From positions 6,797,909 to 6,861,908 of the forward strand of contig CM074804.1 of NCBI GenBank assembly GCA_037447605.1: 64,000 nucleotides of DNA, written 5' to 3'. The notes beneath the pieces were generated by a model that saw only the letters and a list, made by a program, of their open reading frames with translations, was not told the DNA's origin and searched no databases. Made by a program: the position numbers and the translations under genes. Of the stretch, positions 43,401-58,828 are shown piece after piece; position 1 is the first letter of the stretch; each line of letters begins with the position of its first letter. The DNA comes from Zygnema circumcarinatum SAG 698-1b. Its lineage: Eukaryota > Plantae > Zygnematophyceae.

Positions 43401-45500
43401 TTAATTCTATGAGCAGCTCAGATATTTTGCATGAACGATTTAGAGTTTTTCATTTACTGTCACATTCAGCGGTTCTTTGTTATAGGAGAAAGTTGCGGAG
43501 GATAGTGGCGTCTAGTTGCAGCCGTTTTTGAAGAGAACCGGTGTTTGTGGGGCGTAGGAGCAGAGCGGGCCTCATTTGCTTAAGTACTTTCTGTCCTATA
43601 GATGTCTGTCTCTTCTTAGGTATCGCTTGTCAAAGGCCTTCATTACTGAAACTTTGGGAAGCAAGAGGAAACAATACTTTGAATATGCCATCTCTATGGT
43701 TGCTGGAGAAGTGTCCTTTCTATGATGCGTTCTTGTTTCGAAGGGGTACGGCGTAGATGATGCTGCAGTGCACGGATAATGCTGCACTGCTGTCACTAAC
43801 GGGGGCTCGAATGATGGCTTGTAATCTCAGAGCATTGGAGCTGTGAGCGCCATTTTCCGCGAAACTGACGGCACCCTTACGGGGTACAACATGGATTGGG
43901 GTGCTGCCATCTATGCTGTGGAGGAGGGGCTCCGGCAGCGAGAAGGTCAGCCTTCCGAGCTTTGAGCGTTTCCTCAACCGAACTCTTTTCGCCTGGCTGG
44001 GTTGCTGAGTCGCAATTGCATGCATGAAGAGTCATAAGCGTGCAGGGTATCGTCTGGCAACGTTGTGTAGACTATCATCGTCAATTGTTGAATTCCTAAA
44101 ATGGTAACGCTTGCGCCTTCTCGGCAATAGGAAAAAATTAAGGCTCAATAAGGCTTAATTTTTTTACCATGGCCAATTCTCTCGTACGAATCTCTACAAA
44201 AGAATATTAAGGACTACAAATGACAGGTTTTAACTTCGGCCTTGCTGGACTCTGCAACCTTTTGGTGGGATGTGAGTTGCAACAGCTGAATGTTCATGAC
44301 TTAATTTCTGAATTGGCATTGGCTACTGTAAACTGGCTTCTGCAGGTCTACCGGATGACGGCAAGAGCCCTCTGGAGGGACGCCTCATGGTATTGGTCGG
44401 AGCAGGAGGAGCAGGCCGGGGGTTGGCATATGGAGTGAAGCTGTTGAGAGGAGAACTAGCAGTGGCTGACCTTGACCAATGTACGTCAGAAGTTCATCAA
44501 CTTCATACTTCAGTTACATTAAGCTATCTCATTTTACTCCATTTCCGAATAATACTTGGTTGCAAACCACTTACTGGTGGGAGGGGCTTCTCTGGCTCTT
44601 GGGAGCTAATAGCTTCCGTTCTCTTATTTGTGGTGTGTGCAGCGCGCGCCCAGGAGGTGGCGGACACATTTGGAGGCTTCACCATCAGCCTGGAGGAGCT
44701 GCGTAAACCAGGGGCGGCTGCGGCAGCTCAGGCCAAGTTCGGAGCGGGGCTAAGCAAGGCGCCAGTGCTGTGCCATGCCACGCCTGTCGGGATGAAACCC
44801 AATGTGGACGCCACGCCCTTCACCAAGGTGCATGGATGGCCTTGGATCATGCTGCTGCCCAGCTTGGGGAACTGCACTGACAGGAGAATGAGACAAGTTG
44901 GTCATGGGGGCAGGGTATCAGACTGGCATGTTAGTGTAGGAAAGTTGGTCCAGGGAATTGCATGTTGTTGGAGGAACTTCTGTGACTAGAAATACTGACA
45001 ATGTTTCCCGAGGGTGCAGGAATCTCTGGATGGCTGGGCTGTAGTTTTTGATGCCGTGTACAACCCCGCGGAAACGCGCCTGCAGCGCGAGGCTAAGGAA
45101 GCCGGCTGCACTCCCGTGAGTGGGGTGGAGATGTTTGTTCGCGAAGCAGAAGAACAGTTTACGCTGTTCACTTCCGGCATCCCAGGTAAGGTTTGGTTGC
45201 AGCTCATGTGGATGTGTACAAAACACCCTTAGCTAAGGGTCTAAAACAGACGTTTGTCTGGCTGAGTTTAAAATAGCTGTTTGAACATGCCGATGAGTTG
45301 AACAAAACCTGCCGGTACTGTTATGTGGTGCCGGTCGAGCCAGTGCAGCCCGTCTTCTTTCTCACAAGAAGGTTTGCGGTTCTTGTTTTGAGAATGGAAG
45401 TATCTAACTTTTTGTTTTTGCGTGATTTGGCAATGTGTGGTTTGCAGCTCCTGGCCAAGTGATGCGGGATGTTCTTCTGGAAAATCTTCTGACCAACTAA
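40433..45500 (+). CDS. Bifunctional-type 3-dehydroquinate dehydratase/shikimate (quinate) dehydrogenase family protein, multi-exon
   Basis: Type I DHQD-fold segments (GATAVEFQLD, GADFVEV, GANIIKV, GELSRLL) then an SDH domain (TKVFGVIGKPI, SVTAPHK, GYNMD, LVGAGGAG, ATPVGM, VFDAVYNP, SGVEMFVR). TAA at 45498-45500. No obvious transit peptide. Confidence 0.92.
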
Positions 45501-46504
45501 ACCTACGACTATCATTTTTGAAGGAAAAAAGGATAGAACATTTCATCGTGTGCTGTCCTTGCTGTACAACGTAGGCCAAAATGCAGCTTCGATTTGCTTG
45601 TGCTTCTTTCCTTCTTCGACCGCCAATAGTGTCACTTTTTTCTTAAACTATGTAGTAGGATTTGACTATGTGCTAGTCTATTAGTGTTGTAAGTTTATAT
45701 AGAGTTTCCGATTTAGCAAGGTCAAAGAATAGCGGCTTGACTACGATTCTTCTGTCCATGTCATTGTTCTAGAAAATATGTTTCTTCTTTTTGTCCAATC
45801 TACTTCAGCCATAAAACAACGTGCAGCAACCCAGACGGATTTACTTCGGACATTATCTGTCCATCGTGTTTGTTGCACGAATCATGTTTACATCGTTTCA
45901 AATCACATAATGTCCCAAATGTACAGTATTCAATATGAACGTTGTGAACGACAATTTGAAACAAACAAACACGCCACTCAAAAGCGAATGCACATGCAAG
46001 CCAATGTGCCAAACTTAACCGAATATGTCATCTCAGAATAGAACAAAGATTCATATGAACATTGGTACCATTGAGCACCATGTCTCCTCCGACCCCCTTC
46101 TTTTCACTTCCTCTCTCCCCACGTGTTCCCAACTTTGTTACCTTCAAACCAAATTGACGAAGAATTGACAGTCCAACATCGTGGCACAAATTAGCATCCT
46201 CTGACATGGTTTTTTTTCGAGCACTCCATCAAGATGAATATTCCATGTAGCTGTCACCCGTCGCCATCGAAAGTGAAGCCATATGTCGCCGGAAGCCCGC
46301 CGTCCTGTTGGGATCGGGCCGCGGCCTCATGGAGCGCGTGCGGCCGCAGCTGCAGGCCGTGCTCTGAGCGTCATTCTGCTCTCGCCGCTGCTACTCGTCC
46401 TTCTCGCCACACAACGAGGCCTACAGACCACACTCCTGATTTTGGTGTGTGCGCGAGAGGTCCAATGGCTTGAGTAGAAACTTTTTGCAGCATTTGCTGC
46501 GCCG

Positions 46505-49500
46505 ATGGCTCGGCTGCTTGTAGCTTCTTTCTCTTCCCTGGGAGCGCTTGTTGTTCCTAGTGAACGAGGTGTCGCTCTCGCGTCTGCTTCTTCCGCAGCT
46601 CCATGCCGGGTTTTTATTTCATCAGCAAGCTGCAAGGGTCGCCCGAGGAGCTGCTGCAAAACAACATGCGCTTCAGCAGATGAGCAAGCTTTGTCTTCGA
46701 TTCACCATGCGAAGTCAAAGCATGCTATTTCTGAAGCTATAGAGCGGCTCCGAGGAAGCGAAGCCGATGTGAGTATGCTGCATCTTGCCCCATGGGTTAC
46801 GCTATCTTAGAAAAGACAATTGGACGACACATATAGAGGGAACCGTCAACTTTTTCCTCCTATTGACTTATGTCAGTTCTATTAATCTCCATTCCCATAT
46901 TTTTTTTCTTATTGCAGTGTCATGTGAATTCATCAAATGTTTCAATTGTGCTTCTATTTTTAATTAACAAGGGCTCATCGTTTAAATGAAACTTCGTTTG
47001 CGAGAAGGAGATAGACCTGCGATACAAGCTTGCAAGTTTATGCGAGGCGTATTCTGCTAGAGAGACATCCATCTCTCAAGAGTGCTGGCAGTTGTGGGAG
47101 GGCTTCTGCAATGCGCTCAAAGACAACAAGCGTTTGCAAACTCTTCATCTTCAGGTTCGCACATGAGAACTTTGGCGCTTTGGCTTCTTGAATCATCCTC
47201 TGAGCACTTTGCAGTTATTCAAAAATTCTGGACACGATCCTTTGACCTCATTGCAACGAGTAGGGTGACTGAAACAATGGCACCACAACATACGCCCAGT
47301 TCTTTGTTTTTCTCCAGGAATGTGATGGTGGCACTTCATAACCCGCAGGCTTTTAGAGTCATCCTTTGCTATGTATGGCTATCGCTGTTTTTGTCGGAGA
47401 TGGTAACTATGCTGGGCTATATAAGTGAACTCCAATGCATTGATCGATTTCGCTCATTCCTAGCGTGTGAAAGTTATATGATATTAAGCGATATATTTAC
47501 CAAAGGCACTTCTGCAGACGATGGCCCCCCCCTTTAGAAGCCTTTTTTACCTCGTAACTTCACCTAAAGTGAATCCTTCCTGAATGTTAAATGCGCGTGC
47601 TAGTTTCTTTCGTTGTATTGCATAGGAAAACCAAAGAATTTAGCTGACTATTTGCCCTCTGGCTTTTATTCTCTTGGTTATTTCTTCTGATTATTGAGGA
47701 CGGGGGAAGAGGACAGGGCAATGACATGGGGCATGCTACAAACATGTCCGCGGCAGGACACGTCTCCCCCTTTATCGCTAGTCTTGCCATGGCTCTTGCT
47801 GGCAGCGAGTCCCTTCGCTTCCTGAACTTGTCAGCGAACGGATTGAGTGCAGATGATGTTGCTGCGATCAGCGATGCGTTGTGTGGGGCAAGGACGATGC
47901 GGGTAAGTCTGAGACAGAAACGTTTGGCCCCTCGAATCATGGCATTTGTTTGCAGCATTCCTTATGCTGCTGAATATTCGTGTTGCATGCTTCTCTGTAT
48001 CAGCAACTCTTATGTCTCTTCTGCTTCTATTATGTCCGTGGCTTGATGGCCTTTCGCCTATATCCATGCCTACGCGGTTGTGTAAACCAGAACTTGCGCG
48101 AAAGGTACAATTCCAGCTTTGTGCGTGTCTCCATTGTTTTTGAAAGTGCGCTTTGAACGCTAGAGGAAGCAGATTATTAGAACTAAGGAATATTCCAAGT
48201 TGTATGGAGGCAAACCGCCCATGTTGAAATCGTCACTAAATATGATCGGAGTTTGCAGATGTCTTATACAATGTGTGAACTCTTTTAGCTTGCTTCTATT
48301 TTCTGAGCCATGTGTTTCACACATCGGTTACCTATGAACGCAATTTCTTTGCCGGAATGATCAGTTATTCCTTGTCCTGTTTCGCTGATCAGTCCACGGA
48401 ATGGTTGGGCTCCCCCAGGCTCTTCACCTTTACGCAAACGAGATCGGAGATGACGGAGCAGTTGCAATCGCTAAATCAATGGCCACTGGACTCAGGTATG
48501 GCATAGCAGATTTCTATGTGTAACAATATATACCTCAGGATGCAGAATTCGGTGGGAAGTCTTCTAAAATGTATGAATAATAGGCAGGATTTATGATAGG
48601 GCTTGCTCAGGGTTGGCGAAGGCCGTTTCGAACCTGTGGTTTTGAGTTGGTCCGCGTTGATGAAGTTTTCCTGTCTACCTTCACGTTATTGGTGTAAGCA
48701 TGCAGCACATTGTACGTTCTGCGACCACCGTTAGGCAGCAGCAGGAGGTCGTTAATAGGCCGCATTCTTAAGGAAAGTAGGTATAAATCTAAGGCGTTGC
48801 TCGCAGTCCCGCTGTTCTCCACCAATCCTTGTACCAATACTATTCCTGAAGTTATGCTATGGCGGCAGACTGGAGGTCCTTGAGCTCAGTTTCAATTCGA
48901 TATCGGATAGGGGCGCTGTGGCTATTGCGAGGGCTTTGGAGCAGCAGCAAATCGAGCAGTCGAGCGCGCCCTTCTTCCTGCACCTCCGCCACAACAATGT
49001 TGGTCCAGCAGGCAGGGCTGCTCTTGCCAGAGTATACCCGCTTCGCCTTGCAATTCCATCTGCAGAATTTGCAACAGAGGAAATTCGAATTACAGAGACC
49101 AGTGGGAATGAACCGGCCATTCCAGACAGAGAAGAGTCTGAAGGAAAGGAGGTCAGTGGAAGTCCGAGATTGGAATATGCTGATGCTGATGCGGCGGTGG
49201 CTGGGCAGAATATGTCTCGAACAAGGAGTGCAGTGTTTGTAGATGGGAATCCAGGTGTAGGTTTATGGACTGAGGCATGCATTGGAGGATCTATACCTTC
49301 AGTGAGCATAGAATCTTCTGCATCAACAGGTGGTGCAAGTGTGGCGATCTCTGAGGAAGTGACAACTGAGACGGGGTCAGCCTCATTATCAGATGCCAAG
49401 CTCTCTCCCTATCTTCTCAGTGGGGAGAGTGTGGAGACTGATTTTCCTGAGGACAGCAGGATGGACGAAAATAAAAAATCTCTTACTGCTTCTGAAAGGG

Positions 49501-52262
49501 CAGGGCTCCACCACGAGGTTCTCCTTGAAGGAGCATCAACCGGTGACCCTGCGATGCATTCATTGAGTGTTCTGGTTGAGCCTCCTGCTAGCATTAAGGA
49601 CTCTCGCCTTGCCGAGCCGCCTGCTCTAACTTTGGCAGTACATGGGGAGGAGAAATTTTGTGCTCCTTCTAGTTCTGGAGAACAAGAGAGCAGTACTTCA
49701 GAGCCTGCAGTGGAAAAGGCTGATGTGGGCGCTCTGTGCACTGAGGCTGTGGATACCTCTCAGTCTCAGCCAAGTCAGCTGCTTTCAGAACCGAGGAGAC
49801 CCCTCCCTTCATTCTCACAAGCTTCATCAGACGGAGAATCTACGACATCCTTTCCCTCACAATCGCCACCTTTATCAATGAGCTTAATGCCACCTTTTGC
49901 TGACAGTGCTCAAAGCAGAGTGCCTTCCATTGAACAGGACTCTGAGCTCAACGGAGCCCTGCCTGCAACACCAAGCACCGCAGAGACTCCATACTCAGCA
50001 GCCACTGTAAGAGCGCCACCTGGCAGCCTGACAGTCAGCCAGACACCACAGCCTGCGTTTCCTGCGACCTTGCGCGAATCAGAGGGCGGTCTCACGTTCC
50101 ACATGGCGGTTGCGCTTTCGAGGAAACTGCAGACGACAAAACGAGAAGAGGAGGCTTCTCCTAGTCAACTTGGCCCCACTCGGGACATTTCCTCCCCCTC
50201 GCTTGGTTCGAACCCCTCGAGCAGCGGCGAGCTCAAGGAGGCTTTGCTACCATTGAGAGCTTCCGAGGAGAGGCAAGGGAGGGAGGTGCAGAGTGGGCAA
50301 CCGAAGCTAAGTCAGAGTGGCTGGAATCGCTACATCGAGAAGGGCCCTGCTGATCTCGGGACGCTTCTGCCCAGTGATTGGCGGGATGCGATAGCGGCGC
50401 ATGGCGGCCTGGAGGCCCTTCCGCATTTGAATGCGATGTTGGAGGGGGCATGGAAGAGGGGAGTCGAAGTCTACCCGAGGTGAGCTGCAGCAGGGAGGAG
50501 GCTCGCTGGCTGGGGTCGTAAGCAGATAGCAGAGGTTTAATAGGCGGACTGGGGGGCAAAGTGATGAGCTTGGGCGGCAGTGTTCTTAGGGCGGGTACCT
50601 TGGAAGGGGCGGGATTTGAATTTTTTGTCCCCTCAAGCCATGAACCTATATTTGGCGGTTTTTTCAGGTATGAGGACATTTTCCGAGCATTTGAACTGTG
50701 TCCATACGAGAAAATGCGCGTAGTTATTATCGGGTGAGTAATGTTCTTCCTCGGGATATCTGTCTTGACGTCGTGCAGCATGGTATTCTTGCATGTTCAC
50801 TGTTGCAAGTTCTTTATAAGGCATCAGTTCGCTCAGAGTTGTGGGCTGAGCGCGCTCCCTGTGGGGCCAGGCAAGACCCCTACCCTCGCCAAGGTGCTGC
50901 TAACGGCCTCGCGTTCTCCAGCCACCAGGTGGGCCTGAGGCTGTGCCCCCAACCTCACCCCCCCAGCACCCGCCGTCCATCTCTCGCAAAAGCTGACAGT
51001 GAGGTAGTACCGGGGGGGGGAGGGTGATTGGCAGTGGGCTCGTCGGGGCACGCATGCGCAGAGCCTCACAAACATCTTCCTTGAATTGGAGAGAAACATG
51101 AAGGCCAGCAGCATACATTGGGAAATGCCGAAATCAGGAGATCTTTCCAAATGGGCTGAACAGGTGAAGGCTGCATATGTAGACTTTGTGGCAGACTCGT
51201 CCACAGTTGGTTTTTTCTGTCGTTTTGAGCTCTCTTTTTTGTGGCTTCTAAGAAAGTTGCTTCCAGCAAATCCACACAAAGAGCATCTTAGGCACTATTG
51301 GGGACAAATCCTCACAGACTTCATGGACCAGCAGCAAATGCTTATGTGGCTGCCTGCTGCCTGGAATAGCTCCACACTCCACAGAAAGCAGGCGGAATCC
51401 ATGCAGCTTTTTACATATTCGTCCAGGAAGTCACTTAATCGCCTGCGATAGGCCGCTTCTGACTGGAAGCTGCAAGTGGCCACTGACAGGGGGTCCTTTT
51501 GCTCAACGCTTCTCTCACCATTGCCAGCCGCCCCCCCACATCAGAGGGCGGGAAGCAGGCGGGAGATGAGGCGGAGCAATCTCACAAGGAGGCTTGGCGC
51601 CCGTTCACGCAGGCGGCCGTGCAGGCGGCCTGCTTGCGGCCGGGGCCCCCCATTGTTTTCCTGCTGTGGGGGAAAGATGCTCAGGTATAGCAGCTTTTTC
51701 TGCCACTTCCTCCTTCCTCTTTCTTGTTGATTTGCCTGTCGTAGAACCTCTCCGTCTCCCAGGACCATGACAGTGGAAGAAGGGAAACGCTCGTGCGAAT
51801 GTGATTGTGGCAGACAAGGTGGCCAAGGCCCTGCTCGCCCCTGGAAGCCTCGGCTGACGTGGCGCTGCGTGCAATGTGCAGAAGCTGCAACCCTTGATCA
51901 GGGAATGGGGCCCGCAGCATGAAATTCTGACAGCTGGCCACCCGTCGCCACTCTCCGTAAAAAAGTTCGAAGGTACAAACTGAGCTTTGGATCCAAGCCG
52001 GTGCCCTCTGTGCGAATTTTCCCTTTGGAAACCTCATAGTTTGCGTGGCCTTTGGGACCCCCAGTCATGATCTTTATTTTCTGAATAACTCTATCCAACT
52101 TGTATAGTATGATGCTTCCTGCATTCATAGTCCTACTGAATACGGCTGACCCTTTTCTGTTTCGATTCTGGACCTTTCTTGGGGCTAGGCTGTAGCCACT
52201 TCAACAAAGTCAACGACTTCTTTACGAGCAGAGGACTCCCTCTTGTATCGTGGAGACTCTGA
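46505..52262 (+). CDS. RNI-like leucine-rich-repeat protein fused to a family-1 uracil-DNA glycosylase, multi-exon
   Basis: LRR exons: LQTLHLQGN, LRFLNLSANGLS, ALHLYANEIGDDGAVAIA, LEVLELSFNSISDRGAVAIA and LHLRHNNVGPAG. UNG exons: VYPR|YEDIFRAFELCP, RVVIIG|QDPY, GLAFS, SLTNIFLEL, GDLSKWAEQ|GVLLLN, VFLLWGKDAQ, GHPSPLS and GCSHFNKVN. TGA at 52260-52262. The start at 46505 is tentative. Confidence 0.85.
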
Positions 52263-53384
52263 AAGCCAATCTGTGCGCGACCCACAGGCGCAGTGGGGAG
52301 GGGCGTGAAGCCCGTTGTGTAGATACAGAAGGGGTTCGGGAGCTTGTGTCGGCATGACATTAAACCACGAGGCTGATGTACAGCATATGTAGCTTTCCTT
52401 TTCCTTCACTGAAGCTGACTCCTTCTGGGCCTTGTTTTGGGAAGCTTATTTCCTGGTGGGTTTTGAAAAGTTATGGCGATTTTTCGTTTCTGGCACGACC
52501 CACCTCGCTTTGCTCGGCGGCTTTGTGGGGGCCAGCCTGAAACCACACGCATTTCTAACCATGTGAAGGGACCCGCAGTTCCGTTATAGCGTTCCGTGAC
52601 TTGGGCAGACCATGGAACTTCAGTCCTGGTACCGTTGGGTCTGTCACGTCCGATCCCGAATCTCGTCAACTTGTATTTGTCCTGTCCGTGTCGGCACGCA
52701 TCAATGCCCGTACGGACGCCACCTGCGTGGCGCGCCCAGATAGGTGCGTTCCTCCAGAACGGACAAATTTACCGTACGCCATCTGTGACGGCCTGCGGAT
52801 TATCTTCGTTCGAAAACGTAAGAAAGTATCGTCGTCAACGGAAGTCAAAATCAGTCGCTTTGAATCTTTGTAACTCCCACTGGCGGCTGCCATGTGGCAG
52901 ATCCGGTCAACGCCACCGTCATTACGCCAACAGCCCACCGACACCGATCGTCGGCGGGAGGTTGGTCGGTCGTACGGACGGCAGGACACCTGCCTGCTCC
53001 GTAGGGCGGCGCGACGCTGGATAGGCTGGGACACGTGTCAGACGGCCAATGAAGTGGTGGCGGCCACAGAGCCCACAGGCCACCGCAGATTCTCTCTTTT
53101 GTCGTTTTGCGGATCGAGACGGGCAGATTATTGTGCGAGTTTCCGAATCGACGACACATAAATGCGGACGGGGGCGGGGGGGAGCACTCGCAAAAAAGAT
53201 TTACATGAAAAAAAAAAAAAAAAAAAAAAAACGAAAAAATGATAGAGTGTGTGCAGGTCGATGGGAGCCATCGCCTGCGAGCTCTGAGCTGCATGCGGCC
53301 CCTGCTACGGATGTGGACATTAGAACGCAGTGTCGTGTATTAGAATTCCAATCAGGAATTTTAAAAGTCGGGCGGTTTTATTAA

Positions 53385-58828
<5,444 letters not shown>

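Follow-up and report, generated by a model that had tools for sequence, protein, structure and literature searches.

An expressed gene of Zygnema circumcarinatum joins leucine-rich repeats to a divergent family-1 uracil-DNA glycosylase

A stretch of 64,000 nucleotides from the alga Zygnema circumcarinatum SAG 698-1b (assembly GCA_037447605.1, contig CM074804.1, positions 6,797,909 to 6,861,908; hereafter the window, in whose coordinates all positions are given) carries a gene in which an array of leucine-rich repeats (LRRs) is fused to a family-1 uracil-DNA glycosylase (UNG). The gene, at 46505-52262 on the + strand, is real and expressed; its architecture is apparently undescribed, and one loop of its active site is unusual. 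Family-1 UNGs are among the most conserved of repair enzymes, and their Ser-Pro pinch loop is nearly invariant. Their N-terminal tails are, to our knowledge, described as disordered targeting or docking peptides and not as folded solenoids. The reading that best accommodates our data – we give it a probability of about one half – is that the LRR serves as a tether for a uracil glycosylase working in an organelle.

Gene structure and transcripts

Evidence that LRR and UNG belong to one gene comes from transcript contigs assembled from four sequencing runs, drawn from four studies (X1, X2, X4 and X5), and aligned to 46400-52399. The contigs lack introns, which identifies all four runs as RNA. 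The spliced contigs define eleven exons and ten GT-AG introns; the exons, joined in phase, sum to 2898 nt – 965 codons and a stop – with no internal stop. Each run contains one contig of 2.5-2.6 kb leading from exon 4 through all of the UNG exons into the 3′ untranslated region (UTR), and in X4 the contig that links LRR to UNG starts already at the end of exon 3. The single spliced path from LRR to UNG proposed in an earlier note, which was made from the DNA alone, is thus found in every run. Contigs are paths through an assembly graph and not molecules, so that the evidence for a single transcript is strong but short of proof.

The fusion itself holds without any choice of splice site, because exon 5 alone (48869-50479) carries both LRRs and the start of the UNG domain. 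The earlier note had read this exon as an uninterrupted unit comprising two LRRs, a linker and the beginning of the glycosylase, and so it proves to be: the exon is free of stops and both of its splice joints are present in all four runs. The alternative of two separate genes, or of a mis-joined model, is ruled out at the level of exons by the contigs together with the open linker, with the proviso that contigs do not represent single molecules. The features of the gene are as follows.

46505 to 46768, + strand: exon 1 (amino acids 1-88), start codon and transit-peptide-like leader (amino acids 1-58)
47008 to 47154, + strand: exon 2 (amino acids 89-137), degenerate first LRR and the LxxLxL strand of the following repeat
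47717 to 47902, + strand: exon 3 (amino acids 138-199), one RNI-type LRR
48419 to 48495, + strand: exon 4 (amino acids 200-224), one LRR (Pfam LRR_6, E 0.005, under the cutoff)
48869 to 49037, + strand: exon 5, first part (amino acids ~226-281), last two RNI-type LRRs, beta-alpha-beta-alpha
49038 to 50300, + strand: exon 5, middle (amino acids ~282-702), ~420-amino-acid disordered linker rich in Ser, Pro and Glu
50301 to 50479, + strand: exon 5, end (amino acids ~703-761), short helix and the N-terminal helices of UNG, to VYP
50668 to 50733, + strand: exon 6, UNG, TIGR00628 positions 38-57
50871 to 50928, + strand: exon 7, water-activating loop GQDPYP and GLAFS
51035 to 51163, + strand: exon 8, proline-free loop in place of the proline-rich loop; joint 50925-51032 in four of four runs
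51490 to 51684, + strand: exon 9, uracil-binding LLLN, 13-amino-acid insertion before SH, LWG loop
51882 to 51972, + strand: exon 10, leucine intercalation loop HPSPLS
52189 to 52262, + strand: exon 11, C-terminal helix, conserved Trp, stop

At the 5′ end the contigs begin at ~46373-46400, and an in-frame stop at 46475 lies upstream of the start codon; the 3′ UTR extends beyond 52399. The 5′ UTR also holds a minimal upstream open reading frame (Met-Ala-stop, 46465-46473), 31 nt ahead of the start codon. Several acceptors lack a pyrimidine tract. Those of introns 2 and 7 (47716 and 51034) are purine-rich, with 18-23% pyrimidine, and are nonetheless used in spliced contigs, while X4 contains an additional minor acceptor near 47853.

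The repeat arc and the linker

All searches were made exon by exon. Exons 2-5 yield about five RNI-type repeats, that is, tandem LxxLxLxxN repeats of ~28 amino acids with beta-alpha structure, and their consensus positions are intact. In exon 5 Pfam recognises LRR_6 twice, with 29.5 bits where the cutoff is 23.4, and the same region finds a match in the PDB with an E value of 1.4e-10; exon 3 matches the LRRs of NLRP5 and DRC5 (E 4e-4 to 6e-4). Taken together, the PDB matches of exons 3 and 5 show a resemblance to repeats of the NLRP5, DRC5, radial-spoke and LRRC34 type.

A single-sequence AlphaFold model of exon 5 arranges residues 1-56 as strand-helix pairs, leaves residues 57-477 with a predicted local distance difference test score (pLDDT) below 50, and resumes with helices from residue 482. 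This shortens the linker from the ~450 amino acids previously estimated to ~420, rich in Ser, Pro and Glu and acidic over the first two thirds. The linker is coding sequence and not a stretch of intergenic DNA left open by chance, because its 424 codons are free of stops where 16.6 would be expected (P ~6e-8; the other five frames contain 7-24) and because it shows codon-position bias. No internal repeat, pattern resembling a nuclear localisation signal, or PIP-box pattern was found in the linker of exon 5. Along its length (49056-50327) the GC content of third codon positions (GC3) climbs from 0.37 to 0.46 and then, from Met 50103, to 0.62, nearing the values of the UNG domain. Translation from this in-frame Met would give ~330 amino acids, a length usual for UNGs of eukaryotes, and the rise in GC3 near it may mark the start of an older, stand-alone UNG.

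Such a start raises the question of how old and how functional the union is. The gene could be a young or loosely selected chimera, formed when an LRR gene and a downstream UNG gene became joined by loss of a stop, with the LRR carried along as a passenger. The working enzyme would then be mostly UNG alone, produced from an internal start (Met 50103, for example) or by cleavage of the linker, and the gene may be nothing other than the alga's ordinary, fast-evolving housekeeping UNG. We regard this as somewhat unlikely, but a number of observations besides the GC3 gradient favour it and count against a tethered enzyme. Firstly, intron 1 can end at either of two acceptors, separated by 7 nt: one at 47008, which is in frame (X4 and X5), and one at 47015 (X1 and X2), which escaped the earlier note and shifts the frame, leading to a stop at 47823. 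The frameshifted form is the assembled path in two of the four runs, and both forms are probably common, because contigs retain only one path; the 47015 form is possibly a case of regulated unproductive splicing. Secondly, introns 2, 3, 4 and 8 are partly retained in low-depth contigs. Thirdly, the 5′ contigs have depths of 11-30, against 38-69 for the 3′ contig, and are thus 2-3 times shallower. Finally, no LRR-UNG ortholog that would attest conservation of the link across species was found; this is a weak negative, in that the collections searched lack even the present gene.

Against the chimera stand the 424 linker codons, all open and with coding-like bias, and the intact consensus positions of the LRRs. 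Moreover, none of the four runs contains a contig with a separate 5′ exon or with a break within exon 5. Contig depth, for its part, is no measure of transcript level, and lower depth toward the 5′ end is to be expected from 3′ bias, which would yield the same loss. An extra internal start, or a UNG-only product, may nonetheless exist alongside the fusion.

The glycosylase domain

Exons 6-10 match TIGR00628/PRK05254 collinearly, at positions 38-57, 59-76, 82-113, 114-165 and 174-192, respectively. The GQDPY, GLAFS, LLLN and HPSPLS motifs picked out in the earlier note are all where they were reported to be. GQDPY (motif A) supplies the catalytic Asp (50875) and the thymine-excluding Tyr (50881); the uracil pocket keeps the Phe of GLAFS (50914) and the Asn of LLLN (51505); and the leucine loop HPSPLS (motif B, 51939-51956) is intact, with both its catalytic His and its Leu. 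The pinch Ser is also retained (51062). In a set of 282 homologues the catalytic and pocket residues – Q, D, Y, F, S, N and H, all of them kept here – are 98-100% conserved.

Other positions have changed. The equivalent of His148 is Pro (50884, giving GQDPYP), as in 47 of the 282 homologues (17%), and that of Gln152 is Ala (50896), a residue found there in 1%. In the proline-rich loop PPS has become Ala-Gln-Ser: of the two prolines, which 98% and 81% of homologues retain, neither remains, and among the 270 homologues that could be scored not one is without any proline in the pinch loop. The proline-free loop, encoded by exon 8, is in addition three residues longer. Further along, an insertion of 13 residues extends the spacing from LLN to SH to 24 residues, compared with 11 in 248 of 252 homologues. 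The Gly-Ser loop keeps LWG and continues with Lys, at a position that is variable among homologues (Lys in 13%). Mean identity to the reference sequences is 38%, compared with 51% among the references themselves, which places the domain on a long branch.

Judged by profile and by motifs A and B, the domain is a family-1 homologue; it departs from the canonical proline-loop motif, which makes it a divergent variant. The earlier note had argued from GQDPYP, among other signs, that this is not a housekeeping enzyme. That variant, shared with 47 homologues, is a weak sign; the low identity and the proline-free pinch loop, the latter missed at the time, are stronger ones.

We considered whether the loss of PPS might be an artefact of splicing. 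Alternative acceptors at 50966 or 51061, or read-through of intron 7, would restore it; none of these is seen in any run, and the frame from 50966 runs into a stop. Intron 7 itself (50929-51034), read in the frame of exon 7, holds a proline-rich stretch ending in PPS at the place where the protein lost its PPS loop. No transcript uses this stretch, which could be chance or an intronised remnant.

The consequences of these changes can be gauged from human UNG, where His148 contacts phosphate -1, and Ser169 and Gln152 contact phosphate 0 (PMC3794593). Pro167, Pro168 and Ala214 adjoin the bound DNA, with the 5′ side described as more flexible (PMC6912673), and efficient UNG activity requires five motifs, the proline-rich loop among them (PMC5934625). 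In the Zygnema protein the changes are concentrated around the -1 and 0 phosphates, and the insertion lies near the equivalent of Ala214. From this pattern we infer an active uracil glycosylase with a loosened grip on the 5′ side of its DNA. A degenerate pinch loop would also suit a protein whose role is mainly structural or weakly catalytic – a DNA-scanning part of an organellar replisome, or a reader of uracil, with the LRR holding the complex – and herpes and pox virus UNGs offer a precedent (PMC5934625). This we consider distinctly unlikely, in that every catalytic and pocket residue has been kept, which argues for selection on excision.

Relatives and origin

Neither the whole of exon 5 nor its UNG-start region gave any match in word searches. 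Exon 9, scanned with HMMER against 1.84e9 representatives, matched five bacterial UNGs of 167-354 amino acids (best E 7.6e-7), none of which has an LRR, and one further sequence that is unrelated and of low complexity. Searches of metagenome and viral contigs with the same exon returned generic UNGs only (31-45%), as did genome scans, and among the 194 loci that were fetched there is none with an LRR nearby. The ESM Atlas contained generic LRR_6 clusters and UDG fragments. That the architecture may be new, as the earlier note supposed, is in keeping with the literature searched: no description of an LRR-UNG protein was found there or in the supplements of two Zygnema genome papers, although the latter may lack a full table of domain combinations.

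Of the five bacterial proteins that are the only UNG matches of exon 9, four belong to an accessory clade of soil-bacterial UNGs. This would suggest that the UNG domain was acquired horizontally from this clade and does not descend from a green-lineage UNG, a question of origin that is independent of function. The clade shares GxDPYP and a similar RPGPP stretch, and the tree of exon 9 places the Zygnema gene beside it with support of ~0.7. The remaining evidence runs the other way. Summed over exons, identity to the accessory clade (38%) is not above that to canonical bacterial UNGs (39%) or to three eukaryote and giant-virus UNGs (38%); the clade carries HPAARG or HPSGRS where the gene here keeps HPSPLS; and in the tree of the end of exon 5 the Zygnema sequence falls with those of eukaryotes and giant viruses, at the tip of a very long branch. 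The trees of the other exons disagree with that of exon 9, with low support, and all were built per exon from references that include no plant or algal UNG. On balance we think this origin unlikely.

The accessory clade has features of its own. Its members (L002:5911-6858; P0001, P0005, P0009-P0014, P0017, P0021, P0022) possess an N-terminal domain of ~110 amino acids without a Pfam match, and their leucine loop, which reads HPAARG or HPSSRG, is non-canonical. One accessory-clade UNG adjoins genes for a DUF2075/SLFN helicase and for MazG-like, HNH and FtsK proteins, an arrangement like that of a defence island; the clade may represent an undescribed anti-phage UNG. A second group of divergent UNG-like genes, from viral and metagenome contigs that are probably large phages (L113, L128, L173-L175, L177, L179, L189-L191), shows an altered loop after PYH and has VFLG in place of LWG.

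As to its immediate surroundings, the gene is followed, on the same strand, by one for a GH9 endoglucanase (54066-54765 and beyond), and upstream lies a shikimate/quinate dehydrogenase-like gene that ends near 45500. Local duplication from a neighbouring gene was considered as a source of the leader or the LRR and rejected: neither has a duplicate-like match among neighbours within the window.

The leader and a proposed tethered enzyme

The N-terminus had been described as rich in Ser, Ala and Arg, poor in acidic residues and reminiscent of a transit peptide, and its composition agrees. Amino acids 1-58 comprise 14 Ser/Thr, 11 Ala, 7 Arg/Lys and a single Asp/Glu, whereas the next 30 residues include 6 acidic ones; as judged from composition, amino acids 1-58 form no strong amphipathic helix. 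The leader looks like a plastid transit peptide. In this respect it is relevant that UNG N-tails are known sites of targeting and of protein interaction (PMC5934625), that UNG activity has been found in maize chloroplasts, and that the tail of AtUNG targets mitochondria (PMC10573277).

At the level of both DNA and RNA, then, the nuclear gene encodes a family-1 UNG in which the short variable N-tail has been enlarged by a leader, about five RNI-type LRRs and a linker of ~420 amino acids. The model of a tethered organellar glycosylase assigns a task to each part. The leader would direct import into an organelle, with the plastid the most likely destination; there the UNG domain would flip uracil into its intact pocket and Asp and His would cut the glycosidic bond. 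The hold on the phosphates 5′ of the uracil would be loosened by the changes at the equivalents of His148, Gln152, Pro167 and Pro168, together with the insertion near that of Ala214. Anchored by its LRR arc to some protein of the nucleoid or replisome, the enzyme would have the reach, through its long linker, to patrol DNA nearby, and tethering would make up for the weaker affinity for DNA. A more specific version of this model, which we advance only tentatively and hold to be improbable as it stands, is that part of the DNA-pinching grip was traded for recruitment or switching via the LRR arc on the nucleoid replisome. If true, the enzyme would be the first family-1 UNG to depend on a partner, and it would open a way into the initial, largely unstudied step of base-excision repair in chloroplasts.

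An LRR joined to an enzyme also invites comparison with immunity. RNI-type LRRs occur in nucleotide-binding, leucine-rich-repeat receptors (NLRs), and the accessory bacterial UNGs with a likeness to exon 9 are associated with a defence-like island; the LRR might thus act as a sensor or gate that shuts the enzyme until a ligand or viral protein binds, whereupon uracil-containing foreign DNA would be attacked. We consider this very unlikely. A Pfam scan of ten exons (the 19-amino-acid GQDPY exon 7 lay outside it) revealed no NB-ARC, NACHT or TIR domain; a flexible linker of 420 amino acids is better suited to tethering than to tight autoinhibition; the leader speaks for an organelle; and this type of LRR is commonest in ciliary and other non-immune proteins.

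Beyond the tethered enzyme that we favour, a natural and expressed UNG without pinch prolines offers a direct test of the necessity of the loop, and a UNG of the plastid type, in an alga related to land plants, would be a concrete candidate. Should the gene turn out to be merely a lineage-specific chimera, it would be a modest example of LRR shuffling.

Comparison with known systems

The nearest point of reference is the plant UNG (AtUNG, At3g18630, and BvUNG; cd10027/TIGR00628), which likewise has a C-terminal family-1 domain with the catalytic and pocket residues, and also shares a disordered N-tail, a helix just ahead of the domain and N-terminal organelle targeting (PMC12428235, PMC10573277). 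The N-terminal part of plant UNG, however, is ~150 amino acids long, whereas here it spans ~700 and includes a folded LRR arc; the proline-free loop, the 13-amino-acid insertion after LLN and a much lower identity to other UNGs further set the Zygnema protein apart.

UNG as the C-terminal domain of a fusion is also seen in a giant-virus endonuclease IV-UNG (L192) and in an endonuclease III-UNG (P0112). In both the partner is an enzyme of the next step of repair, whereas here it is a protein-binding solenoid on a 420-amino-acid linker. The endonuclease IV (AP_endonuc_2) fusion (L192:1576-3318) unites two successive steps of base excision in one giant-virus protein; P0112 comes from a metagenome. 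Herpes and pox virus UNGs resemble the Zygnema enzyme in their insertions into loops of the family-1 domain and in possible non-canonical, complex-bound roles (PMC5934625). In gamma-herpesviruses, however, it is the leucine loop that carries the insertion, and the pinch residues are retained. The Zygnema enzyme has instead a canonical leucine loop and an altered proline loop; the viral enzymes also lack an LRR.

With regard to the repeats, RNI-type LRR proteins such as NLRC3/NLRP, RanGAP, LRRC34, DRC5 and GALA are built from the same 28-residue beta-alpha units (LRR_6), from which the present protein differs in having only about five repeats, no nucleotide-binding domain and a fused glycosylase. 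The accessory bacterial clade (P0001, P0003, P0005, P0006 and kin), finally, shares GxDPYP, erosion of the proline loop and the best match to exon 9; it differs in lacking the canonical HPSPLS, in keeping at least one loop proline, in having no LRR, and in an identity to the Zygnema domain that is no higher than background.

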